A stretch of DNA of 64,000 nucleotides from Chrysemys picta bellii (Eukaryota). Numbering within the stretch: the first letter of the stretch is position 1; each line of letters opens with the position of its first letter. Below, one piece after another: positions 701 through 50,123 of this stretch. The position numbers and the translations under genes are program-made. The notes beneath the pieces were generated by a model. That model was not told the DNA's origin. It saw only the letters and a program-made list of their open reading frames with translations, and did no database searches. Location of the stretch: NCBI RefSeq assembly GCF_011386835.1, contig NC_088794.1:9176001-9240000 (forward strand), written 5' to 3'.

Positions 701-1015
701 GGGTTAAAAACCAAATCCTCCATTCACAGCGCAGGCAGGGCTGCGAGGGACCGGAATAGCAGAGGGACCTTCCTGTGCCAGCCCCCAGGCACCTGGGGCC
801 CCGCTCCTGAGCCGGCTCCCGGCCCGGGCGTGTACAAGGATCGGTCCCCTCTGCAGCGCGGCCCCGGGGAAATCGCCCCGGCCCGGCGGTGAGTGGGGGC
901 GCCGGGGAGACCCAGCGTCGCGGCGAGAGGCGGCCCCGGGGCGGGAGGGAGACAGCAGCAGAGGCAGGAAATCGCTGCTTGGAGGAAGTGGCAGAGCGAG
1001 GTGGGGATCGGAGCC
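701..1015 (+). promoter_or_regulatory. Shared promoter/leader-exon module, copy 1 (upstream of TBRG1-like); putative non-coding exon ~764-888
   Basis: GGGTTAAA 701-708, GGGACCTTCCTGTGCCAGCC from 764, donor GGCG|GTGAGT (GT 889-890), intronic GCAGAGGCAGGAAATCGCTG...GGGATCGGAGC; homologous to 5304-5585, 23150-23432(-), 26113-26400. Promoter role is inference. Confidence 0.7.
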
Positions 1016-1204
1016 GGGGGGGGGGGGGGCAGAGAGAGACACCCCCACTCAGCCAGCTCCGGGGCATCACGGGCTGGGGGTGGGGGTTGTGCCCTGAGCC
1101 CTGCAGGGTCCCCCAGACCAACTATATTAGCGGTACCCCCGAGCCAGCTAGTCCCCATGGGGCTGGTTCAGAGATCTCCCTCCCCCCCCCGCCCCAAGGG
1201 AAAG

Positions 1205-1483
1205 GCCCCGTGTCCCATTCCCCACATCCCTGAGCCAGCCAGGACCCGCCTCCCCCCCCAGACCCCATGTCCAATATTCTCCCACACCCCTGAGCCAGCC
1301 AGGACCCGCCTCCCCGCCCCAGACCCCATGTCCAATATTCTCCCACACCCCTGAGCCAGCCAGGACCCGCCTCCCCCCCCCAGACCCCATGTCCAATATT
1401 CTCCCACACCCCTGAGCCAGCCAGGACCCGCCTCCCCCCCCCAGACCCCATGTCCAATATTCTCCCACACCCCTGAGCCAGCC
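1205..1483. repeat. ~61-bp minisatellite, ~4.5 copies
   Basis: Unit CAGACCCCATGTCCAATATTCTCCCACACCCCTGAGCCAGCCAGGACCCGCCTCCCCCCC recurs at 1259, 1320, 1381, 1442. Confidence 0.95.
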
Positions 1484-1565
1484 AGTCTCCTGCTCAGAGC
1501 CAATCAGACAGCAGCAGTAGTGGCTTGTGAGTGAAGGGGCCCAGCCACATACCTTCTTCATAGAT

Positions 1566-1980
1566 CAGGGGTAGGCAACCTATGACACGCGTGCCAAAGG
1601 CGGCACGCAAGCGGATTTTCAGTGGCACTCGCACTGCCCGGGTCCTGGCCACCGGTCCGGGGGGCTCTGCATTTTAATCTAATTTTACATGAAGCTTCTT
1701 AAACCTTTTAAAACCCTTATTTACTTTACATACAACAATAGTTTGCATCTGAAGAAGTGAGGTTCTTACCCACGAAAGCTTATGCTCCCAATACTTCTGT
1801 TAGTCTCAAAGGTGCCACAGGACCCTCTGTTGCTTTTAACAATAGTTTAGTTCTATATTATAGACTTATAGAAAGAGACCTTCTAAAAACGTTAAAATGT
1901 ATGACTGGCACACGAACCCTTAAATTAGAGTGAATAAATGAAGACTCGGCACACCACTTCTGAAAGGTTGCCGACCCCTG
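1566..1980. mobile_element. Non-autonomous hAT-type DNA transposon
   Basis: TIRs CAGGGGTAGGCAACC / GGTTGCCGACCCCTG; 8-bp TSD TCATAGAT / TCACAGAT. Confidence 0.85.
1741..1838 (+). mobile_element. Penelope-like retroelement terminal fragment with hammerhead-like core, nested in the hAT element
   Basis: CTGAAGA 1749-1755, hairpin, GAAA 1774-1777, AGC-TTAT-GCT-C; flanked by duplicated AACAATAGTTT. Confidence 0.65.
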
Positions 1981-2990
1981 TCACAGATGCTCAAGGCCAC
2001 TGAGTCCATCCAGCCCAGCCTCCTGCATCATCTAGGCCAGACGGTCTCCCCCAGCGATTCGGTAAATAGCGCTAAGGGCAGGTCAGTTATACAGAGCCAC
2101 CCAGAGCAGCCTATTGAGTGTGTGTCTTAACACAGCCACGTGCATGGCTACACATCTAGGACAGAGGAGGTAGCCGACACTTAATAGATGAGGGGCTGTA
2201 TCCTGGAAAGGAGAAGCGCTGGGAAGGGCTTAGGGCTCATGGTGGAAACCTGCTGAACATGAGCTGCTAGTGGGAGGGAATATCGCAGTCCCTGGCTGTC
2301 CGAGTAGAGGAGTACAAGGAGAAGCAGGGATGGGGGGGTTACCTCTGTATATGGCATTAGTAAGACTGTTAGTGGGGACTCTGTCCAGTTCTGGTGTGCA
2401 CACTTCAACCAGGATGTTGCCAAGTTGCTAAGGGTTCAAAGAAGAGCTACAGGGACGATTTGAGATCTGGAAAACCTGCCTTGGAGCGAGAGACTAAGGG
2501 CTTGTCTACACAGCAAAATTTACTGGGGTAGCTCTGTAATTATACAGCTGTCATTATACTGGTGCCACTCATAGAGAGACACTTTGCACCAAGCCTAATA
2601 CCTTAAATGTTCTTTTCCTTAATCATATAGTGCATAAGAGAGCACAGATCATACAAAGCAATATACATCTGAAGTCGCAACGTCAGTAAGTCAGCCGGGA
2701 TGCAGGAATTGTTAGGGGGGGCTGGGATGGAGGGGCAAAATGGGCCTTTCTTCTGGCCTTAGCGTTTATGAAATGCGCTGTTCTGCAGAGTCCAGCTGCC
2801 TTTGCAGGGACAGAGCTAATGGAGGGAGCTCTGGGAATGGATGGGAAACAGCGATCTTTGTGTGAGTGTCCATGTGAGAGTGAATCTATGAATGTGTGTG
2901 TCTGTGTGTGCCCAGAGAGGTGATGGTGCCCGGGCTCTCTGATCCAGCAGGTCTGAAGGTGGCTATCCCTCCAGGCGGGGTGAGCTGAGG

Positions 2991-4076
2991 ATGAAGAAGG
3001 TGTCAAGGAAGAGCCAGAATGAGAAGTACCGGCTGAAGTACAGCCGGCTGCGCCGGGCGGCCAAGGCCATGGTGTTCGAGAATGCAGCACTGTGTGATGA
3101 GATTGCGCGGCTGGAGGAGAAATTCCTGCGGGCGAGAGAGGAGCGTCGATTCCTCTTCACCAAGCTGCTGCAGCTCCAGGCACTGTCAGCCGAGGAGGAG
3201 AGCCCGGCGGTGCCATTGGGGGGCATCTCAGCAGGGTACGGCGTGGCACCGACCCCTGGCCCAGATGAGCCAGCGCCTGCAGGGAAGCGGCCCAAGAAGG
3301 GCAAGGAGAATGGGCGTGCAGCCAAGCGGCGGGCAGCACCAGACAGGGGGGTGCGGCGGCTGGTGCAGCCAGTGCCGCTGGACCCCTCGGGTCGGCCGGT
3401 TTTCCCCATCGCGCTGGGTGGGCTGACGGTCTACAGCCTGGGTGAGATCGTGGCCGACCGGGCAGGCTTCCACGATGAGGGAGCCATCTACCCAGTGGGT
3501 TTCTGCAGCACACGGGTCTACGCCAGCATGCGGCGCCCCGACCAGCGCTGCCTCTACACCTGCCAGATCAAAGACGGCGGAGTGGGCCCCCGCTTTGAGA
3601 TTGTGCCTGAGGATGAGCCGGGCAGTGCCCTGGCGGGCACCACAGCTGACACCTGCCACGCCCAGCTGCTGGCGGCCATCAGTGCTGCCCGGGGGCGGCC
3701 CTACCCTGAGCTGGAGGCAGCCGGGGCTGATTTCTTCGGCTTCTCGCACCCAGCCGTGCACAACCTCATCCAGAGCTGCCCCGGGGCCCGCAAATGCGGG
3801 GCCTACCGCTGGGTGCGCTTCGAGGTGTGTCGTCCCGGGGATGGGCAGGTGCCCCAGGGGCTGCCCGACAACTGCGCAGCCACCGACTTCCAGTCCTTCC
3901 GCCGCCGCGCCCAGGAGGAGGAGGAACGGGACCGCGGAGGGGGCGGAGCTGGGGGGCGGGCACTGGGGCTGACCCCTGCCCAGGCCTTCACTTCCCCCTG
4001 CTCCTATGAGGAGGTGTTCCTGAGCCGCCCTCTCGAGTCCCCCAGCCATGGCAGCCCCGATGGCTCTGACGACTGA
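2991..4076 (+). CDS. TBRG1: TBRG1/NIAM-like protein (FYRN/FYRC domains), 361 aa, single coding exon
   Basis: N-terminal KSQNEKYRLKY..ENAALCDEIARLEEKF coiled coil, FYRN (LVQPVPLDPSGRPVFPI..IYPVGFCSTRVYAS) and FYRC (GADFFGFSHPAVHNLIQSCPGARKC) match TBRG1 as I recall it; acceptor CAGCAG| at 2950; AATAAA 4443-4448. Likely a paralog/retrocopy rather than the ortholog. Confidence 0.92.
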   Translation: MKKVSRKSQNEKYRLKYSRLRRAAKAMVFENAALCDEIARLEEKFLRAREERRFLFTKLLQLQALSAEEESPAVPLGGISAGYGVAPTPGPDEPAPAGKRPKKGKENGRAAKRRAAPDRGVRRLVQPVPLDPSGRPVFPIALGGLTVYSLGEIVADRAGFHDEGAIYPVGFCSTRVYASMRRPDQRCLYTCQIKDGGVGPRFEIVPEDEPGSALAGTTADTCHAQLLAAISAARGRPYPELEAAGADFFGFSHPAVHNLIQSCPGARKCGAYRWVRFEVCRPGDGQVPQGLPDNCAATDFQSFRRRAQEEEERDRGGGGAGGRALGLTPAQAFTSPCSYEEVFLSRPLESPSHGSPDGSDD

Positions 4077-4442
4077 GACCCCTCTCCCCCTCAGCCCTGG
4101 TGTGGCCTCCATGGAGCCACCCCCCCACAGGCCCGGTACGGCCTGCACAGCTCTTCCCATGAAGCGCCCCCTCCCCCTCCATCCCAGCCTATGCAGAGTT
4201 CCCAGCTCAGCATGGCCCCCACAGCTCCTGCCACTGAGCCCCCTCCCCCTGTGTGGGCATCACATGCCCCTGGCCTGAGCCTCACGTCTCCTCCCACTGA
4301 GCTCTCCCTCTCCACCACAGCATGACAACCCACCCCCCCCCCCGCAGCTGTGCTGGCTCTGGGGGTGGTGCTGTCTTTGGGGACCTGTGCAGCTGACTCC
4401 ACATGGGGCTTGTCCCCACCCTGTGTGAACACTCTGCTCACT

Positions 4443-4448
4443 AATAAA
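4443..4448 (+). terminator. Polyadenylation signal of TBRG1-like gene
   Basis: AATAAA ~370 nt after the stop codon. Confidence 0.65.
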
Positions 4449-5303
4449 GATGATGGTGGAAGCCACATCCCTGGCTCTGTCTGCTCCCTTTCCTGGGTGT
4501 AGGAGGGAGGGGAACAGAGGGGCAGCCGGACGGGTGAGCTACCCCTGCCCTGTTCTGGCTTATCCCATGTTAACAGCGGGATCCAAATCTGGATCTCAAT
4601 CCCTGGTCACTCAGCCATGTGGGGTGTGAGCTTAAGGGGTCACCCAAAGCTGGACAGATGGGGCAGCCTATCCTCTCCCCAGTGGCATCCTGGGGCTGCC
4701 CCCTCCCTCCAAACTAGACTCAGCCACTCCTATCCAACCTAGGCCCAAACAGACCCTTCCTCCATTGGACAGGGGCTCAGACCCACATCCACCCTCTGTC
4801 TTTCAGAGTAAGTGTGCCAGAGCTATTTGCCAGCCAGACCCATTCCTCTTCTCCCAGAGCCTGCTCCCTGTCTGTCTATAACCCTGTGCCTTCCTGCTGT
4901 GCTGGCACTGTCTCTCCTGGGAGATCAAGCAATGTCCCGTCCCCCCCCCCCAACACACACACACTCCGCGCTTCCCATCAGACCCCCCATGTCAGGGCAG
5001 ACCCTGTCTCAGCTGACCGGCTATTCCCGGCTCTGGGAGGAAATGAGGTCTTGTGGGTGGGGAGGGGAATGGAACTCAGGACTCCTGGGTTCTCTTTGCG
5101 GAGGGGGGAGTGGAGTCTAGTTGGTTAGAGCGGGGGGCCTGGGTTTTATTCCCAGCTGTGGCAGCCATAACCCATGGGCTGCCTCTGATATTGTACCACC
5201 CTGGCGCCTCTGTGCCCCCTGTCCCTGGTTCAAATCCCCCCCCCCCCCCCGAGTCTTCCCTCCTACTTTACATCTCCGTTCCCCGGCGAGCTGGGGCATG
5301 AAT

Positions 5304-5585
5304 GGGTTAAAGACACCAAGCTCCTGGAGTGGAGCCTGAAGCAGGGAGGGGGACGGGATAGCGGAGGGACCTTCCTGTGCCAGCCCCGAGCACCTGGGTC
5401 CCGAGCCCCGCTCCCCTCCCCGCCAGTGTGTGCGCGCAGGGCGAGCCCCAGTCTGCAGCCCCCGGGGGATCGCCCCGGCCCGGCGGTGAGTAGGGGCGCG
5501 GGGAGAGGCGGCCACGGCAGGGAGGGAAACAGCAGCAGAGGCAGGAAATTGCACCGCAGGGCTGGGTGGGATCGGAGCCGAACCG
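5304..5585 (+). promoter_or_regulatory. Shared promoter/leader-exon module, copy 2 (upstream of ZNF A); exon ~5366-5485
   Basis: GGGTTAAA 5304, GGGACCTTCCTGTGCCAGCC 5366, donor GGCG|GTGAGT (GT 5486-5487), GCAGAGGCAGGAAATTGC...GGGATCGGAGC. Confidence 0.7.
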
Positions 5586-6488
5586 CGGCTGGGACCGGAG
5601 GACCCCCCCCCCGGTAGCCCCGGGGTTTGTGCTGCAGGCGAGGGCCTGCCCTGCCCGGGGGGAATGGCTGTGCCAGCGATGATCCCGGGTGTGGGCTGAC
5701 TTACGCTGTGGGGAGGAAGTGTAGGGGCAGCCCAGCTGTGGAGAAGGCATGAAGGAGGGGGCCTGGTGTCTGGTGGAGCAATGATTCCCTCTCCAGGGAG
5801 CCACCTGTTCCCTGGCCACACAGTCTACCAAGGGTGAGTTAGTTTGTGGTGTGGGAGCTGGAGATAGGACTCACCCAACTCCTCTAAATGCCCACATGGT
5901 GGGAACAGCAGCTGGGCTGGCACTGAGGGCCCTCAGTGACCTGTTAGTGGGGCTTCTGCTTTTGGGGTTCACTAACTTCAGTTTTTCGGGTGTTATTTAT
6001 AACAATTTTTGAGTTCTGTGTAGATATCAAAAACTGGGGGGTTTCAGGGCTTTCTCTTTGTATATAGTGTAATGAGTAATTTATTTGCTATGGACCCTTG
6101 TGCGCTTTTACGTAGCACTGTTTCAAACAGCACTATGGTAGAGCACACTAGGGAGCTTCTAATGCGCACCAGCAGGATCCCTGTGGCCCAATTAATGCTC
6201 AACACATTCGTTCATTTGAGAAATCATACTCCTGTAGTGCACATTACTGCTCCGTCTAGACAAGCCCTTATAACCCTTCCAATGTTTGATTTCTTTTCTT
6301 TGTATTGGGGTGTGTTGTGGGTGTTTATCATCTAAAATCAGATGCCTTACCCATTAGCAATGCCCTGGGCATCCTGTGCCCAAGTAATGCCAATTTAGGA
6401 GGACATTATGTCTCTTGTGATATGCAATGTAGCTGTGTTGGTTCTAGGATATCAGAGAGACAAAGTGGGTGAGGTAAGATCTTTTATC

Positions 6489-7645
6489 TGGGGTTGTCAA
6501 ATGATTAACAAAATAATTACAGAGGGTCCTGTGGCACCTTTGAGACTAACAGAAGTATTGGGAGCATAAGCTTTCGTGGGTAAGAACCTCACTTCTTCAG
6601 ATGCAAGAAGTGAGGTTCTTACCCACGAAAGCTTATGCTCCCAATACTTCTGTTAGTCTCAAAGGTGCCACAGGACCCTCTGTTGCTTTTTACAGATTCA
6701 GACTAACACGGCTACCCCTCTGATACTAAAATAATTACAATTAATCATGAGATTTAAAAAATAGTCACGATTAATCACAGTTTTAATCGCAGTGTTAAAC
6801 AATAATAGAATATCAATTTAAATTTATTATAAATATGTTTGGATGTTTTTCTACATTTTCAAACATACTGATTTCAATTACAACGCAAAATACAAAGTGT
6901 AGAGTGTTTATAGTGCTCACTTTATATTATTTTTCAGTTCACCTCATACAAGTACTGTGGTGCAATCTCTTTATTGTGAAAGTGCAATTTACAAATGTAG
7001 AATTATTTTTTTACATAAACTACACTCAAAAACAAAACAATGTAAAACTTCAGAGTCTACAAGTCCACTCAGTCCTATTTCTTGTTCAGCCAATCGCTCA
7101 GACAAACAAGGTTGTTTACATTGACAGGACATAATGCTGCCCGCTTCTTAATTACGTCACCTGAAAGTGAGAAAAGGCGTTCGCATGGTACTGTTGTAGC
7201 TGGCGCTGCAAGGTATTTATGTGTCAGATATGCTAAACATTAGTATGCCTCTTCATGCTTTGACTTGTAGGTTCTAAAGTAATAATAATAATTCTACATT
7301 TGTAAGTTGCACTTTCACAATAAAGAGATTGTGCTATAGTACTTGTATGAAGTGAACTGAAAAATACCATTTCTTCTGTTTATCTTTTTTACAGTGCAAA
7401 TATTTGTAATAAAAAATACTAATATAAAGTGAGCACTGTACACTTTGTATTCTGTGTTGTAATTGAAATCAATATATTTGAAAATATAGAAAAAAATCCA
7501 GAAATATTTATAATACATTTAAATTGGTATTCTATAATGGTTTAACAGTGCGATTAAAACAGTGATTAATCATGACTATTTTTTAATCTAGTTAATTTGT
7601 TTTCTGTTAATTGCTTGCGTTGACTGCAATTAATTGACAACCCTA
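6489..7645. mobile_element. Non-autonomous hAT-type DNA transposon (AT-rich)
   Basis: Ends TGGGGTTGTCAA / TTGACAACCCTA; 8-bp TSD CTTTTATC / CTTTTATT. Confidence 0.8.
6519..6725. mobile_element. Palindromic Penelope-like terminal repeat with hammerhead-like core on the minus strand
   Basis: Inverted repeat ~6520-6684; minus strand reads CTGAAGAAGTGAGGTTCTTACCCACGAAAGCTTATGCTC (6600-6562). Confidence 0.65.
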
Positions 7646-7671
7646 CTTTTATTGGACAGAACTTGTGACAC

Positions 7672-7960
7672 AGGCATTGGCTGAGTGCTGGACAAGGACT
7701 CCGAACTCCTGGGTTCGATTCATGGTTCTGCTATAGACCTTGGACAAATCACCTTTCCTCTTCGGGCCTCAGTTCATACTCCTGCACTTTGTCTATTTAG
7801 AGTAGACAGTAGTAAGCTGTTCAGGGCAGGGAGTTTCTTGCACTGCGTGCCCATACAGCACCCCGGGCAACAGAGCCCCAAACTCGGTCATTGGGTGCTC
7901 GTGCGGGTCCCTGGCACAATGGGGCCCTGATCTCTGCTGGGATTTCTAGGTGCTACTGTT
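7672..7960 (+). mobile_element. MIR-like (CORE) SINE remnant
   Basis: tRNA-like head (GAACTCCTGGGTTCGATT), CCTTGGACAAATCAC..GGGCCTCAGT core, tail GGCACAATGGGGCCCTGATCTC. Confidence 0.55.
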
Positions 7961-8066
7961 GGTAGTGACAGTAAGAAGTTCTCAGTGCTGTGATAATCTC
8001 CGATGCCTCCTCTCTGCTGTTCCAGGGGCAGGCGTCCCCGTTCCCAAACCCGACCTCGTGTCCCAC

Positions 8067-8145
8067 ATGGAGCGATGGGAAGAGCTGCAAGTCCCAGACC
8101 CCCAGTGCTCCAAGGAACAGGAGATGCCAAGAGGCGCCCAAGAAG
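8067..8145 (+). CDS. ZNF gene A, KRAB-B-derived first coding exon (exon 8026-8145)
   Basis: Acceptor TTCCAG|8026, frame PVPKPDLVSHMERWEELQVPDPQCS is KRAB-B-like, donor AAG|GTGAG 8146; first ATG 8067; phase 1 joins 8787 in frame. Confidence 0.7.
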
Positions 8146-8786
8146 GTGAGGGTACTCGGAGACCATCTGTGAGGGACCACCCTTTGATTTCACTCCTGGC
8201 ACTCCAGCAGGTGAATAAAGAGGAGAGGGTAGCTAACTCCCTCATCTTCCATGCTAGGCAGGCTTAGCTTCCTTGAGACACCCCCAGCTCTGGAGATCCA
8301 GGGTGGCAGTTTCTCCCCCTTAACCAACATGCAAAACCAGTCTTTCAGGAAGTGTGCGTCTCTTTAACCCCCCGCTCCCCCTCGGTCTCTGACTGTCCCC
8401 TCCCCGCTTCATGGGGGCGGGGGTGATTCAGACACAGATCCTCAAAGGTTCCCATTGATTTCAGTAGAAGTTAGGAGTTTGAAGTACCTTTGAGGATCTG
8501 GATCTCAGCCCTAGGAAGGTGGGTCTGGCCCACCAGAGGTGGGAGGGCAGAGGTAGCTAGTCCTGGGTGTGCATCTCAAGAGCTCTGACCTGGGCTATTG
8601 TCCAGCCACGGTTCCTGACTGCCAGGATATGGAACTGACCCGATAGATGCTGCAGTAACCCTCCGTACATTAGGGAGACAAACATCTAGAGCAGCCATAG
8701 ATTATTACAGGCCACTCCTGATCCGCCCCCTGGCACCTCCTCTGGGCGTCAGTGCAGCAATGACTCCCATCTGGCTCATCTTCCAG

Positions 8787-9952
8787 GTGCCGAGATCCCG
8801 CGTAGAAGCAAGGAAGAGACTTTGCAGCATGAAAGGGAAGCAGCCAGATGCAAAGGGAATGTGTCCTGTAGACCCAAGGGGGGCGATGGCTGGGTGGAAG
8901 GGCAGCAGGATCCCGGACCTCTGGGTTCCATTTGCGTGAAGAGTGGCATGAGCGACGGGTCAGTGGGTGGCACCCCAAGCCCCATCGCCTGCCCCATGTG
9001 CGGAAAGGGCTTCAGCCGCAGGTCGAACCTCACGAAGCACCAGCGGGTCCACACGGGGGAGCGTCCGTTCTGCTGCACCCAGTGTGGGAAATGCTTCACT
9101 CAGAGCTCCAACCTCTGCCGGCACCAGAGCCTCCATGCAGCGGGTGAGGGGCCCTGGTGCTGCCCCGAGTGTGGGGAGAGCTTCACAGGGAGCGCGGGGC
9201 TGGCCAGGCACCGAAGAACACATGCTGTAGGGGAGAGATCCCACTACTGCCACCAATGTGGGAAAGGCTTTGCTAGCCACTCACTTTTGACCATTCACCG
9301 GCGCAGCCACTCGGGGGAGCGGCCGTTCTCATGTGCCCAGTGCGGGCGCAGCTTTGACCGCAGCTCCCTACTGGTGGAGCACCAGCGCACCCACACCGGG
9401 GAGCGCCCCTACCGCTGCCACCAGTGCAGCCAGGGCTTCACCCGCGCCACCCACCTCAGCCGGCACCAGCTAATCCACCGTGGCGAGCGACCTCACGGCT
9501 GCCCCGAGTGTGGCCGGCGCTTCCGGCTCCGGGCTGCATTAGTCAAGCACGTGCGGAGCCACACAGGGGAGCGACCTTACAAGTGTGCTGAGTGTGGGGC
9601 GGTCTTCGCCAGTGTCTCCTCCCTGGCCCGGCACCGCCGGAGCCACGCCGGTGAGAAGCCCCACCACTGCCCCGATTGTGGCAAGAGATTTGGGCAGAGC
9701 ACTGCCTTCGCTGAGCACTGCCGCACCCACACTGGGGAGCGCCCCTACCGCTGCCTGGAGTGTGGCCGCGCCTTCGCTGGCAGCTCCAACTTCATCCGGC
9801 ACCAGAGAATCCACACCGGGGAGCGACCCTACCAGTGCCAGGACTGCGGCCGTACCTTCCGGGTCAGCTCCAACCTAGCCAGGCACCAGAGGACTCACCA
9901 CCTTACTGAGTGTGGAGATACTCCCTTGCTGGGACGGGCAGGACAAAGCTAG
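8787..9952 (+). CDS. ZNF gene A, C2H2 zinc-finger exon (11 fingers); spliced CDS ~414 aa
   Basis: Acceptor TTCCAG|8787; 11 C-x2-C-x12-H-x3-H units with TGERP-type linkers. Confidence 0.93.
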
Positions 9953-15284: not shown

Positions 15285-16654
15285 TTAGTTGGCAGGTGGG
15301 GAGGGGAGTTCGTTATCGCCATCGTCCACCACAATAATAGTGGCATGGAGCTTCCGGTGCTGCGCCAGCTGCGAGGGAAAGCAGAACCCTTTGCCGCATT
15401 GGTGGCAGCGGTGGGGCCGCTCACCGGTGTGGATGGCCTGGTGTTGCACCAGGTTGGAGCTCTGGGCAAAGGCGCGGCCACACTGCCCACAGGCAAAGGG
15501 CCGCTCACCGCTATGGGTCAGTTGGTGCTTGCGCAGCACTTTGCCATCAGCGAAGCCCTTGCCGCAGTGGTGGCAGCGGTAGGGCCGCTCCCCACTGTGC
15601 AGCCGCTGGTGCCTCAAGAAGCTGGAGCTATCACTGAAGGCCCGGCCACATTTGGGGCACTTGTATGGGCGCTCCCCAGTATGCGTGCGCAGGTGCTGCG
15701 TCAGGTTGGAGCTCTGGGCAAATGCCTTGCCGCACTGGTGGCAGTGGTGGGGTTTCTCACCAGTGTGGACTCGCTGATGCTGTGTGAGGTGTGAACTCAT
15801 GCTGAAAGTTTTCCCACACTCAGTGCACCGGAAGGGCCGCTCCCCGGTGTGGATCCTCAGGTGCTTGAGGAGCGGGGAGCGGTCCACAAAGCCCTTGTGG
15901 CACTGGGGACAGCGATGGGGGTTGTCAGGGCTGTGCAGCCGCTGGTGCTTGGCCAACTGGGAGCGCAGACAGAACCCCTTCCCGCACTGTGGGCAGATGA
16001 AAGGCTTCTCCGCCAGGTGGGTCTTCTGGTGCTGCGTCAGGTTGGAGCTCTGGCTGAACCCTTTGCCACACTGGTGGCAGCGGTGGGGTTTCTCGCCAGT
16101 GTGGGTGTACCGGTGCTCGATCAGGTGTGCCCGACGGCCAAATGCCCTCCCACAGTCGGGGCAGCAGTAAGGTCGCTCCCCAGCATGGGTGCGTCGGTGC
16201 TGGGCCAGCCGGGAGCTGTCGGCGAAGCCGCGTCCACAGCTGGGGCAACTGTAGGGGCGCTCGCCTGTGTGGGTACGGGCATGCTTGGTGAGTGACGAAC
16301 TGTCCACAAAGCCTTTGCCACACTGGGGGCAGGTGTAGGGGCGCTCTCCTGTGTGGGTCCGGCCGTGCTTAACTAGGGACGAGCTGTCGGCGAAGCCTTT
16401 GCCGCAGTCGGCACAGCGGTAAGGGCGCTCACCCGTGTGCATGCGCCGGTGCTGCACCAGGTGTGAGGGCCAGGTGAAGGCTTTGCCGCAGTCGGCACAG
16501 TTGTAGGGTTTCCCTGAGTTGGCAGTGGGGAGCGTCATCGGCGGCCACTCCCGGTCGGGGCTGGGGGACAACTCCCACTCGGACCCGCCTGACAGCGCCC
16601 CATCCTCCGGGCCAGGACTCCCCTCCTTGTCCCCACTCTGCGCCTCGTTGCCAG
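15285..16654 (-). CDS. ZNF gene B, C2H2 zinc-finger exon (14 fingers); spliced CDS ~482 aa
   Basis: Acceptor TTCCAG|16654; 14 canonical fingers; C-terminal tail [11 protein letters not shown]. Confidence 0.93.
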
Positions 16655-17418
16655 CTGGAACGACATGAAAACAGATCACCACTCACTGGGCTGAAAAACC
16701 GTCTCCCAACCCACCCTCTAGAGACGGAGCTGGCTGGGAGCCAGTGTCCCAGCACGACACGCAGGCTAGGAGAGGTATCATGGGTTGAAATCCAGGATGT
16801 GCTGGGTTTATGAGGCATGCATTTTTAACAGTGAGAGTAATCAACCATAGGGACAACCTACCAAGGGTTGTGGCGGATTCTCCATGACAAGTTTTAAAGC
16901 AAGTGTGGAGGTTTTTCTAAAAGATCCGGCCTAGTTCAAACAGGAATTAACTCAGGGAAGTTCTCTGGCCTGTGTGATACAGCACAACAGACTAGATAAT
17001 CACAGTGGTCCCTTCTAGCCTTGGAATCCATGATTCCATGGACTACAATGGGGCCAGGACTTCGCCTGTGGATGTCAAGGCCGAAGAGCCCATTGTGCCC
17101 ATCCAGTCGGCCTCCTGTGTAACCCAGGCCAGAGAACTTCACCCAGTATCAAGGTCCTTGGCTGTATAACTTCATAGATTCCAAGGCCACAAGAGACTGT
17201 TGTGATCATCTCGTCTGACTTCCTGTATAACACAGGTCAGAGACCTGCCTCCAAATCTTTCCTCGGGCAGAGCTTTTAGAAAAACATCTAAACTTGATTT
17301 TAAAACTGTCAGGGATGGAGAATCCACCACGATCCTTTTGGATACTGTTCCAGTGGTTCATTACTCTCAACGTTAAAAATGTACCCCTTACTTCCAGTCT
17401 GAATTTGTCTAAGCTTCA

Positions 17419-20400
17419 TATTGTAGGAATAATCGAAACGTGGTGGAACGGTAGTCATGACTGGAGTACAGGTATGGAAGGGTATGTGCTGTGTAGGAAG
17501 GACCGGAACAAAGGCAAAGGTGGGGGAGTAGCATTGTATGTCAATAATGAGGTAAACTGTAAAGAAATAATAAGTGATGGAATGGATAAGACGGAGTCCG
17601 TCTGGGCGATAATCACACTGGGTAAAAGAACTACTAGAGCCTCCCCTGGGATAGTGCTTGGGGTGTGCTATAGACCGCCGGGATCTAGCCTGGATATGGA
17701 CAGAGAACTCTTTAATGTTTTTAGGGAAGTAAATACTAATAGGAACTGTGTAATCATGGGAGACTTTAACTTCCCGGATATAGACTGGGGAACAAATGCT
17801 AGTAACAATAATAGGGCTCAGATTTTCCTAGACGTGATAGCTGATGAATTCCTTCATCAAGTAGTTGCTGAACCGACGAGGGGGGATGCCATTTTAGATT
17901 TGGTTTTGGTGAGTAGTGAGGACTTCGTTGAGGAAATGGTCGTAGGGGACAACCTTGGCTCGAGTGATCATGAGCTAATTCGGTTTAAACTAAATGGAAG
18001 GATCAACAGAATTAAATCGGAGACTAAGGTTTACGATTTCAAAAGGGCTAACTTTAATAAATTAAGGCGACTAGTTAGGGAAGTGGATTGGACTAACATA
18101 TTTATGGATCTAAAGGTGGAAGGCGCCTGGGATTATTTCAAGTTGAAGTTGCAGGAGCTGTCGGAGGCTTGTATCCCGAGAAAGGGAAAACGGTTCGTGG
18201 GCAGGAGATTTAGACCGAGCTGGATGAGCGAGCGTCTCAGAGGGGTGATTAAGAAAAAACAGAAAGCGTACAAGGAGTGGAAGATGGGAGGGATCAGCAA
18301 AGAAACCTACCTTATTGAGGTCAGAGCATGTAGAAATGGAGTGAGAAAGGCCAAAAGCCGTGTAAAGTTGGACCTTGCGAGGGGAATTAAAACCAATAGT
18401 AAGAGGTTTTATAGTCATATAAATAGGAAGAAAACAAAGAAAGAAGAAGTGGGACCGCTTAAGACTGTAGATGGAGTGGAGATTAAGGATAATCTAGGCA
18501 TGGCACAATGTCTAAACAAATATTTTGCATCGGTCTTTAATGAGGCTAATGAAGGGCTTAGGAATAGTGGCAGCGTGACGGATGGGAAGAAAGGAGGGGG
18601 GGTTGACATTATCATATCCGAGGTAGAAGCCAAACTCGAACAGCTTAATGGGACTAAATCGGGCGGACCGGATGATCTTCATCCGAGAATATTAAAGGAA
18701 CTGGCGTGAGAAATTGCAAGCCCGTTAGCAATAATTTTTAATGAATCGGTAAACTCGGGGGTGGTACCGTTTGACTGGAGAATAGCTAATGTGGTTCCTA
18801 TTTTCAAGAAGGGGAAAAAAAGTGACCCGGGTAACTACAGGCCTGTTAGTTTAACATCTGTAATATGCAAGGTCTTGGAAAAAAATTTGAAGGAGAGAGT
18901 AGTTAAGGACCTTGAGGTCAATGGCAATTGGGACAAATTACAACACGGTTTTACGAAAGGTAGATCGTGCCAAACCAACCTGATCTCCTTCTTTGAGAAA
19001 GTAACAGATTTTTTAGATAAAGGAAATGCGGAGGATCTAATATACCTCGATTTCAGCAAAGTGTTTGATACGGTACCGCATGAGGAATTATTGGTTAAAT
19101 TGGAAAAGATGGGGATCGATATGAAAATCCAGAGGTGGATAAAGAACTGGTTAAAGGGGAGACTGCAGCGGGTCGTACTGAAAAGTGAACTGTCAGGTTG
19201 GAGGGAGGTTACCAGTGGAGTTCCTCAAGGTTCGGTTTTGGGTCCGATTTTATTTAATCTATTTATTACTGACCTCGGAACCGAATGTAGGAGTGTGCTG
19301 ATAAAGTTTGCTGATGACACAAAGTTGGGAGGTATTGCCAATTCGGAGAAGGATCGGGATATCCTGCAGGGAGATTTGGATGACCTTGTAAACTAGAGTA
19401 ATAGTAATAGGATGAAATTTAATAGTGAGAAGTGTAAGGTTATGCATTTAGGGATGACTAACAAGAATTTTAGTTATAAGCTGGGGACGCATCGGTTGGA
19501 AGTAACGGAAGAGGAGAAGGACCTCGGAGTCCTGGTTGATCGCAGGATGACTATGAGTCAGCAATGTGACGTGGCCGTGAAAAAAGCTAATGCGGTCTTG
19601 GGATGCATTAGGCGAGGTATTTCTAGTAGGGATAGGGAGGTGCTGGTTCCATTATACAAGGCACTGGTGAGACCTCATTTGGAGTACTGTGTGCAGTTCT
19701 GGTCTCCCATGTTTAAAAAGGATGAATTCAAACTGGAACGGGTACAGAGAAGGGCCATTAGGATGATCCGAGGAATGGAAAACCTGTCGTATGAAAGGAG
19801 ACTCGGGGAGCTCGGTTTGTTTACCTTAACCAAAAGAAGGCTGAGGGGGGATATGATTGCTCTCTTTAAATATATCAGAGGGATAAATACCAGAGAGGGA
19901 GAGGAATTATTTCAGCTCAGTAATAATGTGGACACAAGAACAAATGGATATAAACTGGCCGTCGGGAAGTTTAGGCTTGAAATTAGACGAAGGTTTCTAA
20001 CCATCAGAGGGGTGAAGTTCTGGAACAGCCTTCCGAGGGAAACAGTGGGGGCGAAAGACCTCTCTGGCTTTAAGATTAAGCTTGATAAGTTTATGGAGGG
20101 GACGGTTTGATGGGATAACGTGATTTTAGTCAATAGGTCAATAACGTGCCATCGCTGGTAATTAGTAACAATGGTCAATGATGGGATATTAAAAGTTACT
20201 ACAGAGAACTTTTTCCGGAGGGTCTGGCTGGAGAATCTTGACCGCATGCTCAGGGTTCAGCTGATCGCCATATTTCGGGTCGGGAAGGAATTTTCCTCCA
20301 GGGTAGATTGGCAGAGGCCCAGGAGGTTTTTCGCCTTCCTCCGCAGCATGGGGCAGGGGTCACTTGCTGGGCAGGGGTCGCTTGCTGGAGGATTCTCTAC

Positions 20401-20563
20401 GACTTGAAGTCTTTAAATCATGATTTGGGGACTTCAACAGCTGAGTCAAGGGAGAGAATTATTCCAGGAGTGGGTGGGTCGGCTTTTGTGGCCTGCATAA
20501 TGTGGGAGGTCAGACTAGATGATCATAATGGTCCCTTCTGACCTTAAAGTCTATGAGTCTATA
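17419..20563 (+). mobile_element. Young 5'-truncated CR1 LINE: near-complete ORF2 (APE endonuclease + RT) plus 3' UTR
   Basis: GIIETWW, GDFNFPDIDW, SDH (EN); YLDFSKVFD, GVPQGSVLGP, FADD (RT); one frame to 20110 with only two in-frame stops (18707-9, 19394-6); splits an older antiparallel CR1 at AAGCTTC|AACTTCCAG. Confidence 0.95.
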
Positions 20564-21039
20564 ACTTCCAGCGATTGGATTGTGTTGGACCTTTCTCTGT
20601 CCCCATGTAGATACTTATAGACTGTGGTCAAGTCACCCCTTAACCTTCTCTTTATTAAATTCAATTGTTTGAGCTTCTGGAGTCTCTCACTATAAGGCAG
20701 GTTTCCTAATCCTTTAATCATTCTTGTGGCTCTTCTCTGAATCCCTCTCCAATTTTTAAGCATCCTGCTTGGATTGTGGACACCAGAACTGGACACAGAA
20801 TTCTAAGAGCGGTTGGACCAATGACAAATACAGAGATAAAATAACCTCTCTGCTTCTATTAGAGATTCCCTTGTTTATGCATCCAAGGACTGCACTAGCC
20901 CTTTTGGCCACAGACCATGTTTACCAGGGAGGGGAATTAACCACTGGAACAGCTCCCCTAGGAATGGGGTGGATTCTCCAAGAGATGAGTACACATGGGG
21001 CAGAGAGATGAACATGGATGGAGATAGGCTGACAGGGTT

Positions 21040-21355
21040 AGAATCATAGAAGATTAGGATTGGAAGGAACCTCAGGAGGTCATCTAGTCCAACCCCCTGC
21101 TCAAAGCAGGACCAATCCCCAACTAAATCATCCCAGCCAGGGCTTTGTCAAGCCTGACCTTAAAAACCTCTAAGGAAGGAGATTCCACCACCTCCCTAGG
21201 TAACCCATTCCAGTGCTTCACCACCCTTCTAGTTAAAGTTTTTCCTAATATCCAACCTAAACCTCCCCACTGCAACTTGAGACCATTACTCCTTGTTCTG
21301 TCATCTGCCACCACTGAGAACAGTCTAGATCCATCCTCTTTGGAACCCCCTTTAA
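21040..21355 (-). mobile_element. CR1 3' fragment
   Basis: [33 protein letters not shown] and the TTCTATGATTCT-type tail. Confidence 0.9.
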
Positions 21356-22349
21356 CTCGCCAATGTAGCCCAGTTTGTGAGTTGTGTACACTTCTATAGC
21401 AATCACTGTTAGCATGATCTGCCAACCAATAATTAATTTAAGGCCAGCAGGGCCCATCATAACCACCCAGTCCACCCTCCAATGGCTATTAGCCAAGATG
21501 GTTAGAGATGCAACCCCATGCTCTGGGTGCCCCCAAACCTCTGACTGACAGAAGCTGGGACTGGACGACAGGGGATGGATCACTCAGTAAGTTGCCCTGT
21601 TCTGTTCATTCCCTCTGAAGCATTTGGCACCTGTCGGAAGACAGGACACTGGGCAACATAGACCATAGGTCTGACCCAGTATGGCCATTCTTATGTTCTC
21701 CTTCCTAACGCAGGCCAGAGAATCTCCCCAGCAATTCCCTCCTCCACCCAGTAACTCCTGGCTGAACAACATGTGTCTATTTAACTGGAGAAATGTGAGA
21801 AACATTTAGTTTGACAAATCTGAGAATTCACAAGGCAGAACAAATTTATAATAAGGCTCCATTTATAAATGATTCTTAGATGTCTTGAAGAATGGTGAGT
21901 GACTGGATAGAGCAGCTCAATAAGCTACTTAAACCCATGGTGTATAATTATTATTACTATTAGTGCGATTTATTTATATTACTGCAGCATTTAGGAGCCC
22001 ACGTGGTGGACAAAGACCTCATTGTCCTAGCCCTATACAAACACCAAACAAAACCATCTACACACCTTGTAGTGCTTATAACCATCCACTACACACGCCT
22101 GTTCCACGCTGTGAACATCTGTGCCTCGTGGATTAACACTTTACCTGCCATTTATAAACAGAAGTGTGTCTGACAAAACAAATCCATCCCGAATGTCTCA
22201 GATTACTTATCCAGCTGGAGTCACAACTGACCCCTGTCACATTGATGTGGCAGCTGTTGGTTCCAGTGCCGAACTGGACGAGATGAGGCAGGACCGGACG
22301 GGCTCAGGGCATCTTGGGGAGCCAGGGTTAGTTAAGAAGTGTCTCTCAC

Positions 22350-22428
22350 CTGCAGAAGTGTCTGTAGGGACACAGCTGTCACTGGAGCACTGGGGATCCA
22401 GCGTGCACGGCTCTACCTCTGGCTCCAT
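22350..22428 (-). CDS. ZNF gene B, degenerate KRAB-B-derived first coding exon (exon 22467-22350)
   Basis: Acceptor TCTTCAG|22467, frame ISTPQTSRESQMEPEVEPCTLDPQCS, donor CAG|GTGAG at 22349; 79 coding nt, phase 1 joins 16654 in frame. Confidence 0.65.
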
Positions 22429-23149
22429 CTGGGACTCACGGCTGGTCTGGGGGGTGGAAATCCAGCCCTGAAGACAGAAAAGAGGGGCGACCAGGGCTGG
22501 GTTGAACAGCTGTTACAAAGGACGCTCTGTGAGTTTGAACTTCTTGCCTGGAGGGACATATGATTGCGGCACATGGCAAAAAGGGCCAGGAGACCCATGG
22601 GCACAGCATGGGGGTCCTGAAGACAAAACATCTGGGTGGAAGACGTGCTAATGTGACAGGCAATGGGGATCAAACGAGGGATCTTTGGGGCCAGAGGTAC
22701 CAGCCTCTACTGCCAGGGGCCTCATCCACGCCTAAAAATTAGCTCGACCTAGCGGCATCGCTCAGGGCTGTGAAAAATGTCACGGGCTGTGCTGTAGTTA
22801 GGCCCAATACAGATGTGGCCAGGTCAAGGGGAGAAGTCTTCCTTGGTCCTAGCTACTGCCTGTGGGAGAGGTACATAAACTACATCCCTTCCACTGCTGT
22901 AGGAAGCACCTATGCCGTGGAGTTAGCAGGACAGCACTGTCCCTGTGCCCCTACAGTGTAGACATGGGCATGCCCCGAGCTCCAAGTGCAGCCAGACTCC
23001 GCAGCAGGGGCTGGAACAGAGACTCTCTAGCGGGGACCCTGCGCGCTGCCCAGGGGCTAAGCAGAGAGACAAGGGGCGGGGGCGGTTATATCTTCTATAG
23101 GACCAGCTGGCAGGGAGGGGGGATCTCTCTGGTCCCAGGCACAGGGCAG

Positions 23150-23432
23150 CTCAGATCCCCGGCCCTGCGGCCGCTTCCTCCCGACAGCGATTTCCTCCCT
23201 CTGCGGCTGTTTCCCTCCCGCCCCGGAGCCGCGTCTGCCCCGCTCACCGCCCTGCCGGGGCCCGGGGCTGCAGCCGGGGACTGGCCCTGCGCACACACAG
23301 GCCGGGAGCCGGGCTGGGGACCCAAGTGTCGGTCGGGGCTGGCACAGGAAGGTCCCTCTAGTTATTACGTCCCCAACCCGGGCCGGCTTCTCCTGCTCTG
23401 ATCTGGGGTGAGGAACTCGGTGGGTTTAACCC
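23150..23432 (-). promoter_or_regulatory. Shared promoter/leader-exon module, copy 3 (upstream of ZNF B); exon ~23356-23248
   Basis: Minus strand: GGGTTAAA 23432, GGGACCTTCCTGTGCCAGCC 23356, donor GGCG|GTGAGC (23247), GCAGAGGGAGGAAATCGCTG...GGGATCTGAGC. Confidence 0.7.
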
Positions 23433-23799
23433 ATCCCTCCCCAGACGTCAAGGGAGCGGATTTCTCTCCCTCTCGGGCCTCTGGCTGCCTGCGGGAGTGA
23501 GAGGCTGGGTCCACACAGCTCACACAGGATGTCAAGCTGCTTGGAGTGGCTCATCAACGTGGGTGCCAGCCTCAGGGCCGAGTGATGCAAACCAGGGCAC
23601 AAACCCCAACCCGGTTGTGTGTTCTATTACATAGATTTCACCAACCTAGTATCAAATGTGAACTCCTCCAGCGCTATAATAACTACTTTAACTGGAGTCA
23701 CTGGCAGTTGCCATGGGCACTCGGTCTAGCTTGCCCCCCGGGCAAACCTGCTTTTGTGAGAGATGATCCCTGACACCAAAAATTACAACAATAGTCAGA

Positions 23800-23905
23800 A
23801 AAAAACGAGGAGTCCGGTGGCACCTTAAAGACTAACAGATGTATTTGGGCATAAGCTTTCGTGGGTAAATTGTGGACACAGACTAACATGGCTACTCTCT
23901 GATAC
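23800..23905 (-). mobile_element. Penelope-like terminal fragment (core incomplete)
   Basis: GGTGGCACCTTAAAGACTAACAGAT..GCATAAGCTTTCGTGGG, same family as 1741 and 6519. Confidence 0.6.
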
Positions 23906-25880
23906 TTGACACAATGTTCAGGTTACTCGCAGTCCCAAAGGACCAGTCACTTACCTCAGGTCAATTGCACCTTATATCTTCCCCCAAAGACACCACTTGT
24001 GGCCAATCCTGTAATTAACTAAAGTTTTATTAACTTAAAAAAGGAAACAAGAGAGTTATTCACAAAGTTAAAGCAGGAAACTTACACACACAGACGAGTT
24101 ACCGTCTTAGGTTCCAAAAAGTACATAAGAACATAAGAACGGCTGTACTGGGTCAGACCAAAGGTCCATCTAGTCCAGTATCCTGTCCACTTGATGTTCC
24201 ACTCCACAATGGTTTGTCTGGTGTCTATGGGCTTTCTTCTGTTGGGCAGGAGGTGACACCTCTCGTGGTAAACGAGTATTGCACACGTGGTAATGCTTGT
24301 CTCCTGACTGTGAGGGTTTCCAGTTTCATAGCAAACACTTTACTAGTTACAGAGCAAACACTTAACTGTCACCTTGTAACAGAGGCTACAGATATTATCA
24401 TTGAGATCAATGCCTGCAGCAACTCACAAGCATTTTAAAAAATCCAAACACAGAACATATTTCTATGATGCTAATATATATTTTAACAATGCTAACACAC
24501 AGGTGAACCAGTCTGGTTTCCAGCTATGCAGTTGTCAGTATTCAGGGAGGCCATGGGCATGAGCTGGCATCCTGTCTATTGGTGTCACAACACTGTTCTC
24601 ACAAGAGTTTATTGGCGAAAATCCCAGCAAAGTGAGAGCAGCGTTTGGGTCTTTGCTGGCAAAGCAAAGCTCTCCTACCATTGGAGAAGGGTTCAGAGAA
24701 GAGCTGCAGGAGCTAACTGAGGTCTGCAAAACCAGCTCTATAGTTAAGATTATATTTTTATTGGTAACTGTCGATAAATATCAGTTTCACCATCCGCCCA
24801 CACCCACAGATGAAAAACAATTTCCATTGTAATAATAAAAATGTGCAGCTAGGTAAGGCAAGAAACATGCTGCTTGAGAACTAGAGTTTGATTTAAGGCT
24901 CCATCCCTTGTCTATTTTGACATGTGACATTGCCTGTTAGTGTTTTAGTAAATATAAAGCTTTAACTTTTTTAATCTCGAAGTCTACCGTCATTAAATAT
25001 AATTATTGTCTGACATCTCCCCCCCCCACCTTGTTGGACCCCCTCTAATTTCCCACAACTGTGAAAAATTGAATGAATAAATATTGAAAAAATTGCTGCA
25101 AACCAAACCGATGTGATCCATCAACATTATTTAAAAAAATAAAATTCTGCCAAGCCTGCCAATAGCGAGCCACCAAAGGAGTTCAATGGGTTTAGTTTAT
25201 TCAAGAGAAGGTTAAGAGGTGACGTGACTGACATGGGGAGGGGATTGCTGAGAGCAGAGGGTTCTTTATCCTCCAATCTAGGCAGAGCACAATGCACTGG
25301 CTGGGAGCAGAAGGGAGACAAATGGAGGCGGGGAATTAGGGGACAGTGTTTAGCTGGGAGGAGAAGGAACCATTGGGAGAGCTCCTCTAGGGAGGAGGTG
25401 GGTTGTCCATCACTGGGAGTCTGTCGGTGGAGATGGGGCGTCTCTCTCTCAAAGCTCCGCTCTACCTCAGCCAGGAGTTACTGGGCCAGAGGCAGGAACC
25501 CTGGGGGAGATTCCTGGCCTGGGTTAGGCAGGAGCCTGACGCAGATGGGCACAATGCGCCCTTCTGGCCTTGAACTCCATGACTCTAAATCCAAGCTGTT
25601 ATAAATGACTGTGGGGGGGGGGGGGGGGCAGAGGTTGCCCACAGAATAAACCAGGAGTTTAAGAGGGAGTCTAGTCTCTCAGGTGTTGAGGGAGAAACTT
25701 CCAGTCCATGTGTCGAGGCTGCCATGAGATTTGGCCAGAAGAATAGCGGAAATATAGACAATAGGCTGAAAAGCTAGGATAGAGAAAAGGCCGGAAGGGT
25801 GGCAAGATAATTCTGGGGAGCTTTTGCCTAACACAGAGATGTCAAAGATGGCCCAGGGTCAGATCCTTCACTGGGGTAAA

Positions 25881-26003
25881 TAGGGTGACCAGATGTCCAG
25901 ATTTTATAGGGACAGTCCTGCTATTTGGGGATTTTTCTTATATAGGCTCCTATAACCCCCACCCCCTCTCCCGATTTTTCACACTTGTTGTCTGGTCACC
26001 CTA
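25881..26003. mobile_element. Short MITE
   Basis: TIRs TAGGGTGACCAGA / TCTGGTCACCCTA; no TSD recognised. Confidence 0.65.
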
Positions 26004-26112
26004 GCCCCCATTGACTCCAGTGGAATTGGGGCCAATTTACCCCAGTGGGGGACCTGCCCCATTTCTCACAAGGTATTTAGTGGCTCATGCAGCATCATGG
26101 CTGGGGTGGGAA

Positions 26113-26400
26113 GGGTTAAGCCCAGTGAATCCTGAGTCTGCCACTTCACAGAGCAGACAGCTGGGACGGGGACAGGATAACGGAGGGACCTTCCTGACAG
26201 CGCCCGGCCAGCACCTGGGTCCCCAGCCCGGTCTGGCCCGGGTGTGAGCAGCGGGGTCTGCGGGGATCGCCCCCGCCGGGCGGTGAGTGGGGGGTGCCGG
26301 GCTGCAGCGAGGGGCACCGGGGAGGGAGGGAGAGAAACAGCCGCGGAGGCAGGAAATCGCTGCCCGGGGGAAGCCGCTGCAGGGAGGAGGGGATCGGACT
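26113..26400 (+). promoter_or_regulatory. Shared promoter/leader-exon module, copy 4 (upstream of ZNF C); exon ~26185-26282
   Basis: GGGTTAA 26113, GGGACCTTCCTG 26185, donor GGCG|GTGAGT (GT 26283-26284), GGAGGCAGGAAATCGCTG...GGGATCGGA. Confidence 0.7.
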
Positions 26401-26941: not shown

Positions 26942-26981
26942 GTAACAAATCACTTCTCCATCCCCTGCCCTTACTGCATAA

Positions 26982-50082: not shown

Positions 50083-50123
50083 CTCTTGATACAATAATTA
50101 ATGGCATTAATCATGTATCACTT

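Follow-up and report, generated by a model that had tools for sequence, protein, structure and literature searches.

A putative promoter and leader-exon unit repeated at the 5' ends of zinc-finger genes and of unrelated neighbours in a turtle gene cluster

The stretch of 64,000 nucleotides analysed here (the window), from contig NC_088794.1 of the turtle Chrysemys picta bellii (positions 9,176,001 to 9,240,000), raises the question of why zinc-finger (ZNF) genes and genes unrelated to them begin with similar sequence, and how that sequence came to stand before each of them. The window contains a turtle ZNF gene cluster together with TBRG1 and TACO1, the genes being named by their Pfam domains and homologs. 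A unit of ~0.4 kb is found in it in four clear and two probable copies, designated c1 to c6, and all of them (6/6) are at the 5' end of a gene and in sense, which accounts for every gene in the first 57 kb. It is likely that the copies are paralogous promoter and leader-exon units spread by local DNA duplication, whose most conserved element is an ETS-type TTCC core, and that related copies start the four ZNF genes (A-D) and also the unrelated TBRG1 and TACO1. This is a promoter duplication of a known kind and not a new kind of genetic element; in the literature, no specific description of this unit was found.

The four clear copies, c1 to c4, show an identical order of elements: GGGTTAA, GGGACCTTCCTG, an ATG-free stretch, a GGCG/GTGAG donor (the slash marks the splice junction) and an intron block going from GGAAATCGCTG to GGGATC (Table 1). 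The distance between the starts of GGGTTAA and GGGACCTTCCTG is 63, 62, 76 and 72 nt in c1 to c4, the lengths from GGGACC up to the donor are 125, 120, 109 and 98 nt, respectively, and the interval from GGGTTAA to the donor contains no ATG in any of them. Inside the intron, at 52-79 nt from the donor, the copies show GGAAAT(C/T)GC and then GGGATC. In c1 this block is GGAAATCGCTG..GGAGGAAG..GGGATC, at 967-1009; c3 and c4 show GGAAATCGC at 23195 and 26352, with GGGATC at 23159 and 26390, respectively; and c2 has GGAAATTGC instead, at 5544, followed by GGGATC at 5568. These ordered elements and spacings, the ATG-free interval and the variant block of the second copy had been described in the initial annotation, and all its landmark coordinates for c1 to c4 are exact. 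The copies show 65-70% identity over 300-400 nt in pairwise BLAST alignments, a profile built from the four of them (nhmmer) recovers each with E values from 1e-93 to 1e-106, and the exact 12-mer GGGACCTTCCTG occurs in the window solely at these four places. The homology starts ~20 nt upstream of GGGTTAA and ends at about 1100, 5690, 23051 and 26500; the module limits first given are correct for the landmarks, but the homology extends ~100-150 nt further at the 3' end, past GGGATC. The introns around c1 to c4 do not align among one another. The finger exons of the same ZNF genes show 61-66% identity (BLAST), so the divergence of the copies matches that of the coding exons and fits a unit duplicating together with its genes. 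The units are GC-rich (0.68-0.71), and their observed/expected CpG ratio is 0.50-0.61, versus 0.40 for the window.

Table 1. Coordinates of the unit copies and of the genes that they precede. Positions are those of the window, except for the c1 orthologs, which are numbered within their own loci.
Feature	Coordinates	Strand	Landmarks
c1, leader unit of TBRG1	690..1100	+	GGGTTAA 701; ETS-like core GGGACCTTCCTG 764-775; exon end 888 (GGCG/GTGAGT)
c2, leader unit of ZNF A	5293..5690	+	GGGTTAA 5304; core 5366-5377; exon end 5485
c3, leader unit of ZNF B	23051..23444	-	GGGTTAA 23432; core 23356-23345; exon end 23248 (GGCG/GTGAGC)
c4, leader unit of ZNF C	26102..26500	+	GGGTTAA 26113; core 26185-26196; exon end 26282
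c5, probable copy, exon 1 of KRAB-ZNF D	47106..47294	+	core GGGGCCTTCCCG 47125; ATG 47271; donor after 47294
c6, probable copy, inverted relative to c5, TACO1 strand	46880..47035	-	core GGGACCTTCCGG 47015; CCTGGGTCCCGAG 28 nt later
c1 ortholog upstream of TBRG1, Caretta (L001)	8550-8880		
c1 ortholog upstream of TBRG1, Carettochelys (L002)	10031-10375		
c1 ortholog upstream of TBRG1, Emydura (L006)	8192-8554		
TBRG1 main exon	2948..4076	+	NAGNAG acceptor 2948/2951; ATG 2991; stop 4074-4076
ZNF A coding exons	8026..9952	+	exon 2 8026-8145 (ATG 8067); finger exon 8787-9952; Pfam zf-C2H2
ZNF B coding exons	15285..22467	-	exon 2 22467-22350 (ATG 22428); finger exon from ~16654 to 15285 (16682-15285 by Pfam and homologs); Pfam
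ZNF C coding exons (predicted)	26676..29524	+	exon 2 26676-26941 (ATG 26722); finger exon ~28224-29524
ZNF D coding exons	47722..56976	+	KRAB-A exon 47722-47851; finger exon ~55924-56976
TACO1	36220..46494	-	ATG exon after tttcag acceptor 46494; ATGs 46482, 46464; later exons to ~36.2 kb

Public gene models of other turtles use the donors of c1 and c2, in agreement with the proposal of a 5' leader exon that lies in sense and whose splice donor works. The RefSeq TBRG1 isoform X1 of Carettochelys (XP_074854357.1) has the c1 ortholog as its first coding exon (100% mapping); this exon ends exactly at ...GGCCCGGCG/GTGAGT, and the core is translated as ...GGTFL.... The position of the TBRG1 acceptor, ~40 nt before the ATG, was read from isoform N-termini, and its NAGNAG sequence gives one-residue isoform pairs in Caretta and Dermochelys; with the Carettochelys donor, it backs the predicted junction 888>2951. 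The donor of c2 had been assigned two possible acceptors, 5797 and 8026. When window positions 5468-5485 are joined to 8026-8148 the product is SPRPGG/AGVPVPKPDL..., the same as in Malaclemys XP_053881117.1 (P0138), and the Caretta model CAM4581996.1 (P0147) shows the same 5485>8026 junction, so that 8026 holds and there is no need for 5797. The next junction, 8145>8787, also agrees with the Malaclemys model (residues 856-901 and beyond), whose identity to the window is 100% in the TBRG1 exon and in a part of c2. Exon 2 of ZNF B is homologous to exon 2 of ZNF A (BLAST pairs 8009-8150 with 22485-22345), with an acceptor in the equivalent position, and the proposed junction 23248>22467 follows by paralogy. 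The splicing of c4, c5 and c6 to the exons downstream is predicted only. An open three-exon model with frame-compatible joins is obtained for each of ZNF A, B and C. A protein search with the translated unit (residues 85-185) returned the query alone, the N-terminally extended isoforms being hidden in 90% clusters, and when the finger exon of ZNF C was the query, generic zinc-finger proteins dominated the homologs listed, with no ortholog among them.

Between distant turtles, conservation of the unit is highest in the block that surrounds GGGACCTTCCTG, with 0.78-0.90 identity versus 0.2-0.5 in its flanks. The TTCC of the core is present in 13/13 of the copies and orthologs tabulated, including the alligator GGGATCTTCC and the Emydura GGGAACTTCC. 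On the other strand the core is CAGGAAGG in c1-c4, CCGGAAGG in c6, CGGGAAGG in c5 and CAGGAAGT in Emydura c2, and its GGAAGG, present in 13/13, contains the GGAA that we take to be the ETS-family core. Both motifs of the initial annotation, the kappaB pattern GGGRNNYYCC and an ETS-like GGAA on the other strand, are present: the former fits c1-c6 and their orthologs, and an ETS site on the other strand fits them equally. In exon 1 of the alligator TBRG1, of uncertain homology to c1, CACTTCCTG is retained and GGGR is not. Across all copies the ETS core, and not its flanks, is conserved, and the invariant TTCC would be an ETS-family site, e.g. for GABP. Most c1-c4 copies and orthologs in which the intron block is kept show in it a further pair of GGAA motifs, spaced by 17 nt; c2 of the window and c1 of Emydura match only one of them, Caretta c1 has GGACAT in the place of the first motif, and Carettochelys c1 and the alligator copy gave no match. 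The alligator copy has GGGTTAA, as do c2-c4. The donor G/GTGAG is kept in c1-c4 and in the c1 and c2 orthologs of Caretta and Carettochelys (regex survey), despite 65-70% identity elsewhere. The Emydura c2 donor, read from the sequence, is GGTG/GTGAGC, and Emydura c1 shows only nearby GTGAG sites at shifted offsets.

The copies c1 and c2 are in the same positions, upstream and downstream of TBRG1, in Caretta, in Carettochelys and in the side-necked turtle Emydura. They occur, with the window, in four lineages (side-necked, soft-shelled-group, marine and emydid turtles), and these shared positions imply that both are older than the last common ancestor of living turtles. The alligator has a c2-like unit downstream of TBRG1 (14699-14975 of its locus, L003), which contains GGGGTTAAAC, then GGAGGGATCTTCCTGTGCC, then CCTGGGTTCTGAGCCCAGC, and is followed, after ~55 nt, by an exon that resembles exon 2 of ZNF A; no finger array was found within 8 kb after it. 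The alligator TBRG1 exon 1 was not accepted as a recognisable copy: it shares with c1 only CACTTCCTG, a GCG/GTGAGC donor and a 48-nt intron match (E 0.002). The intron between this exon and the main exon also contains a degenerate duplicate of the coding sequence for the TBRG1 N-terminus (11750-11836; 55% over 29 aa). No copy was found within 3 kb upstream of TBRG1 in the lizard Podarcis, nor within 10 kb at the next ZNF gene upstream of TBRG1 in Caretta. The initial idea of a cluster-specific cassette of the ZNF genes needs a correction here, since not every nearby ZNF gene has the unit. In the lizard locus (L004) TBRG1 and TACO1 are tail-to-tail with no ZNF gene between them, so the three ZNF genes between them in turtles represent an insertion into an older pair. 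In ~190 kb of DNA, comprising the window and the related loci, every match is a gene-start copy or an ortholog of one, and there are no strays.

The total of four copies given at first was short by the two diverged copies c5 and c6, which are back to back in a CpG island at 46.9-47.3 kb (c5 on the + strand, start 47125; c6 on the - strand, start 47015), with cores ~110 nt apart. In c5 the old donor is mutated to GGCGGGGAG, and because of this loss the exon reads through the former intron block (AGAAGTCGCTGCC) to its ATG and a new donor. On the opposite strand c6 shows a donor-like GGGCT/GTGAGTGGGG, with 46892 as last exon base. Both are probably true copies, but weaker than c1-c4, since the core of c5 is undetectable in Chelydra and the donor-like site of c6 is there GTGGCT, which also makes the use of this donor doubtful. 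The alternative for this pair, and for it only, is that the likeness to c1-c4 is a convergence of GC-rich ETS-type promoters provided with a consensus donor, which would leave TACO1 and ZNF D without true copies. It is favoured by these Chelydra differences, by the failure of the full-length profile search to recover c5, by modest shuffle z-scores (2.7-6.3 for c5 and 1.5-4.1 for c6), and by the way in which the core profile was made: its E values of 2e-8 (c5) and 3e-10 (c6) are partly circular, because it was built with both. Nevertheless, the control GC-rich segments show z below 2.6, and the ordered pair GGGRCCTTCC-N14-22-YTGGGKCCC, present in c5 and c6 at the usual spacing, appears in 2/20000 shuffles of the island and in 0/200 whole-window shuffles. 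Independent support comes from the BLAST alignment of c5 with c3 (64.6% over 198 nt, E 2e-7; 47125-47289 +), which continues across the former intron block from AGAAGTCGCTGCC to GGAGCAAGCGGCC; from the match of c6 to the four-copy profile (nhmmer, 47016-46867 -; E 4e-5), with its GTGAGTGGGG at 124 nt from the core start versus 125 nt in c1; and from the Chelydra c6 ortholog (E 7.5e-10 with the core profile). The 3' part of c5, with its ATG and donor, is kept in Chelydra. Convergence is considered unlikely, although it retains some weight.

Two other explanations concern the unit as a whole. The less probable, which we regard as very improbable, is that it is, or derives from, a dispersed transposable element, and that its position at gene starts reflects the small sample of 64 kb. 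Fragments of transposable elements do abut some copies: a repeat similar to short interspersed elements (SINE-like) ends ~40 nt upstream of the homology start of c2, and a similar tail is just downstream of c1, at 1160-1195. In addition, the centre of a palindrome similar to miniature inverted-repeat transposable elements (MITE-like, 38386-38541) fits the short composite pattern, but it scores E = 12 with the core profile. The repeat search of the four copies and their flanks gave no shared terminal inverted repeats, target-site duplications or poly-A tails, in line with the initial view that the module does not look like a transposon; Rfam and tRNA scans gave no match to the unit, and a metagenome scan with the 23-nt core gave 0 matches. 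Real repeat families of the same DNA, namely CR1 long interspersed elements (LINEs), SINE-like repeats and MITE-like palindromes, recur many times, in both orientations and away from gene starts, whereas the unit has no extra copies in ~190 kb, is in sense at a gene 5' end in 6/6 copies, and is orthologously fixed from side-necked turtles to alligator. The other explanation, also improbable, is that the unit is a repeated internal 5'-UTR (untranslated region) exon without a promoter of its own, the start being further upstream (e.g. at the CpG island of the upstream ZNF gene) and the exons being spliced into long read-throughs. In XP_053881117.1 of Malaclemys and CAM4581996.1 of Caretta the c2 exon is an internal one, entered at 5345 and placed between the exons of TBRG1 and those of ZNF A, so it can be used with no transcription start of its own; a second 5' exon upstream of TBRG1 is spliced to the TBRG1 acceptor that also serves c1; and the Carettochelys model, the only one that reaches that far, starts upstream of the position of GGGTTAA. 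On the other hand, the fusion of neighbouring genes in Gnomon models is commonly a read-through artefact. The opposite strand of c3, and the divergence of c5 and c6 from a single island, call for a separate start for each of these copies. In addition, the homology begins only ~20 nt upstream of GGGTTAA with non-exonic sequence on both sides, and the most conserved element resembles a transcription-factor motif and not a splice signal. The promoter and leader-exon reading is preferred over both, with several observations weighing against it: the internal use of the c2 exon and the upstream start of the Carettochelys model, together with the weakness of c5 and c6, as seen in Chelydra; the loss of GGGTTAA in c1 of Caretta (GGGCTGA) and Carettochelys (GGGTTCA); a tree of the copies in which the c1 orthologs form a clade (94/100 support) and the rest is unresolved, so that it gives no order of duplication; and an identity between window and Caretta of ~83% for the units versus 83-92% for their surroundings. 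As the units are no better kept than what surrounds them, constraint is concentrated in the short motifs.

Under the promoter and leader-exon reading, the unit would comprise a proximal promoter, an untranslated leader exon of ~100-190 nt, a splice donor and 150-200 nt from the beginning of intron 1, and transcription would start within it, of which the GC and CpG enrichment and the conserved ETS-like core are indirect signs. It would have multiplied by local DNA duplication within the turtle ZNF cluster, carried along with the genes, and at least once the 5' block would also have been set before a different gene. One copy may have been placed before TBRG1 and one before TACO1, or taken from them, by partial duplication, and the back-to-back pair c5/c6 would form the divergent promoter of TACO1 and ZNF D. 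The ETS core and the two GGAA motifs of the intron block may drive broad, shared expression. From sequence we infer the promoter activity of the unit, its start sites (near GGGACC in the initial annotation), the factor that binds it, the co-regulation of the genes and the direction of donation. The donation of the cassette to unrelated coding sequences, already suggested in the initial annotation, agrees with a unit that heads TBRG1 and, in diverged form, TACO1; donation as such is an evolutionary reading, in which these two genes may be donors or recipients. A wider proposal can be put forward tentatively: a portable promoter and leader cassette, installed by copying at the DNA level without transposon machinery, may have come to stand before at least two unrelated genes as well as the ZNF genes, its inverted pair may have made a divergent promoter, and the neighbourhood may have been kept as an ETS-driven co-expression group for more than 200 million years.

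One of the nearest known parallels is the tandem duplication of (KRAB) ZNF genes together with their promoter and non-coding exon 1, as in the ZNF clusters of mammals. Both show a leader exon, one or more small N-terminal exons and one large finger exon, with copies in sense with each paralog and as diverged as the coding exons, and ZNF D has the textbook form, with the ATG in exon 1 followed by a KRAB-A exon. The locus differs in that the unit also heads the non-ZNF genes TBRG1 and TACO1, and that a neighbouring ZNF gene is without it. Alternative first-exon arrays, such as those of protocadherin and UGT1A, also combine in one cluster several first exons that are homologous and have separate upstream sequences; an array of this type was ruled out, as there are no common constant exons and each copy feeds a different gene, on both strands. 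Genes with a single-exon coding sequence and retrocopies can gain 5' exons and promoters from their neighbourhood, which is known as piggy-backing (Carelli et al., 2016, PMC4772013). Similarly, the one-exon coding sequence of TBRG1 is fed by an upstream non-coding exon, and this exon is a copy of the leader unit of its neighbours; the TBRG1 promoter is, however, a duplicated copy rather than a shared one. TBRG1 has a single-exon coding sequence in turtle, alligator, lizard and caecilian (in caecilian, from the gene range only), and a retrocopy origin could not be supported because introns are absent from this sequence even in caecilian. The island with TACO1 and ZNF D head to head resembles the divergent CpG-island promoters of which GABP is characteristic (strict consensus CCGGAAGTG; Collins et al., 2007, PMC2077898), and each side contains (C/G)GGAAGG, which in c6 is CCGGAAGG. 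Unlike those promoters, the island looks like one unit present in two inverted copies rather than like a single shared site, and c1-c4 are not divergent.

The genes of the window show the following features in addition to those in Table 1. The 361-aa open reading frame (ORF) at 2991-4076 (+) shows 96-97% identity to TBRG1 of Caretta and Platysternon and groups in one cluster with TBRG1 of at least 12 turtle species; the gene first called TBRG1-like is therefore the ordinary turtle TBRG1. Its coding sequence is entirely within one exon and encodes the Pfam domains INO80E, FYRN and FYRC. None of ZNF A, B and C has a KRAB-A exon; exon 2 of ZNF A encodes a KRAB-B-like remnant. The ZNF C model is based on splice-site reading and a frame-compatible join, with Pfam zf-C2H2 and no outside gene model. 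ZNF D shows KRAB (Pfam, E 6e-18) and zf-C2H2, and its KRAB-A exon is in frame with the ATG of exon 1. TACO1 was identified by Pfam TACO1_YebC_N and by homologs that carry this name. Just upstream of its start codon, at 46500-46740 (-), there is a TG-rich tandem array of gttacag/gagctc units, i.e. several acceptor-like sites, which is also kept in Chelydra. The Malaclemys model XP_053881117.1 fuses an upstream ZNF gene, TBRG1 (donor after 4036, just before the stop), the c2 exon (5345-5485) and ZNF A, and Caretta CAM4581996.1 shows much the same fusion; such fused models are either read-through transcripts or annotation artefacts.

The window also contains numerous repeats. The SINE-like repeat of 4661-5250 has copies at 11521-11057 (-) and 45664-45774, and shows GGACTCCTGGGTTCT and a tRNA-like GGTTCAAATCC tail, then a C run. 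Near-perfect palindromic MITE-like elements are at 6519-6683, 31747-31844, 53544-53734 and 38386-38541, two long imperfect palindromes of 0.6-0.8 kb are at 6754-7586 and 16813-17388, and one palindrome family recurs at 1743-1845, 23787-23868 and 60462-60577. Two matches were rejected as copies of the unit. The match at 38440 (+) is the centre of the 156-nt element 38386-38541, and the one at 61034-61008 (-), GGTTAG..GGGACCTCCCTG, has E 0.045 with the core profile and can be no more than a decayed remnant of the unit. The stretch that includes it, 61008-61052 (-), shows GCGGTTAGGGG and, ~25 nt later, CCAGGGACCTCCCTGTCCCAGCC, and is followed by neither a GC-rich exon nor a donor. A CR1-like LINE ORF2 (endonuclease and reverse transcriptase; 17294-20110, +) is antisense in the ZNF B intron, and two more LINE fragments are at 32514-33359 (-) and 41567-42427 (-). 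The ZNF D intron contains ORFs that resemble the integrase and RNase H of long terminal repeat (LTR) retroelements (52120-52485, -, and 53752-54120, -), according to the ORF list only. Tandem repeats include a 48-bp minisatellite of 15 copies and 98% identity in the ZNF C intron (26982-27710), with relatives at 43371-43607 (-), 48780-48871 (-) and 7843-7934; a 61-bp repeat (4.4 copies, 97%) in the TBRG1 leader intron, at 1217-1485; and very G-rich repeats of 39-91 bp close to the window end, at 61946-62402. An assembly gap of 167 nt is at 49916-50082.

The locus would provide a clean and datable case of a promoter and leader exon copied as one block and ending before unrelated genes. It may bear on the way in which regulation is obtained by new genes and by those whose coding sequence is a single exon, and on the origin of divergent promoters via inverted duplication. 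For turtle genome annotators it offers precise 5' exons and junctions of six genes, and it would account for public models of this locus being fused or showing odd N-terminal extensions.

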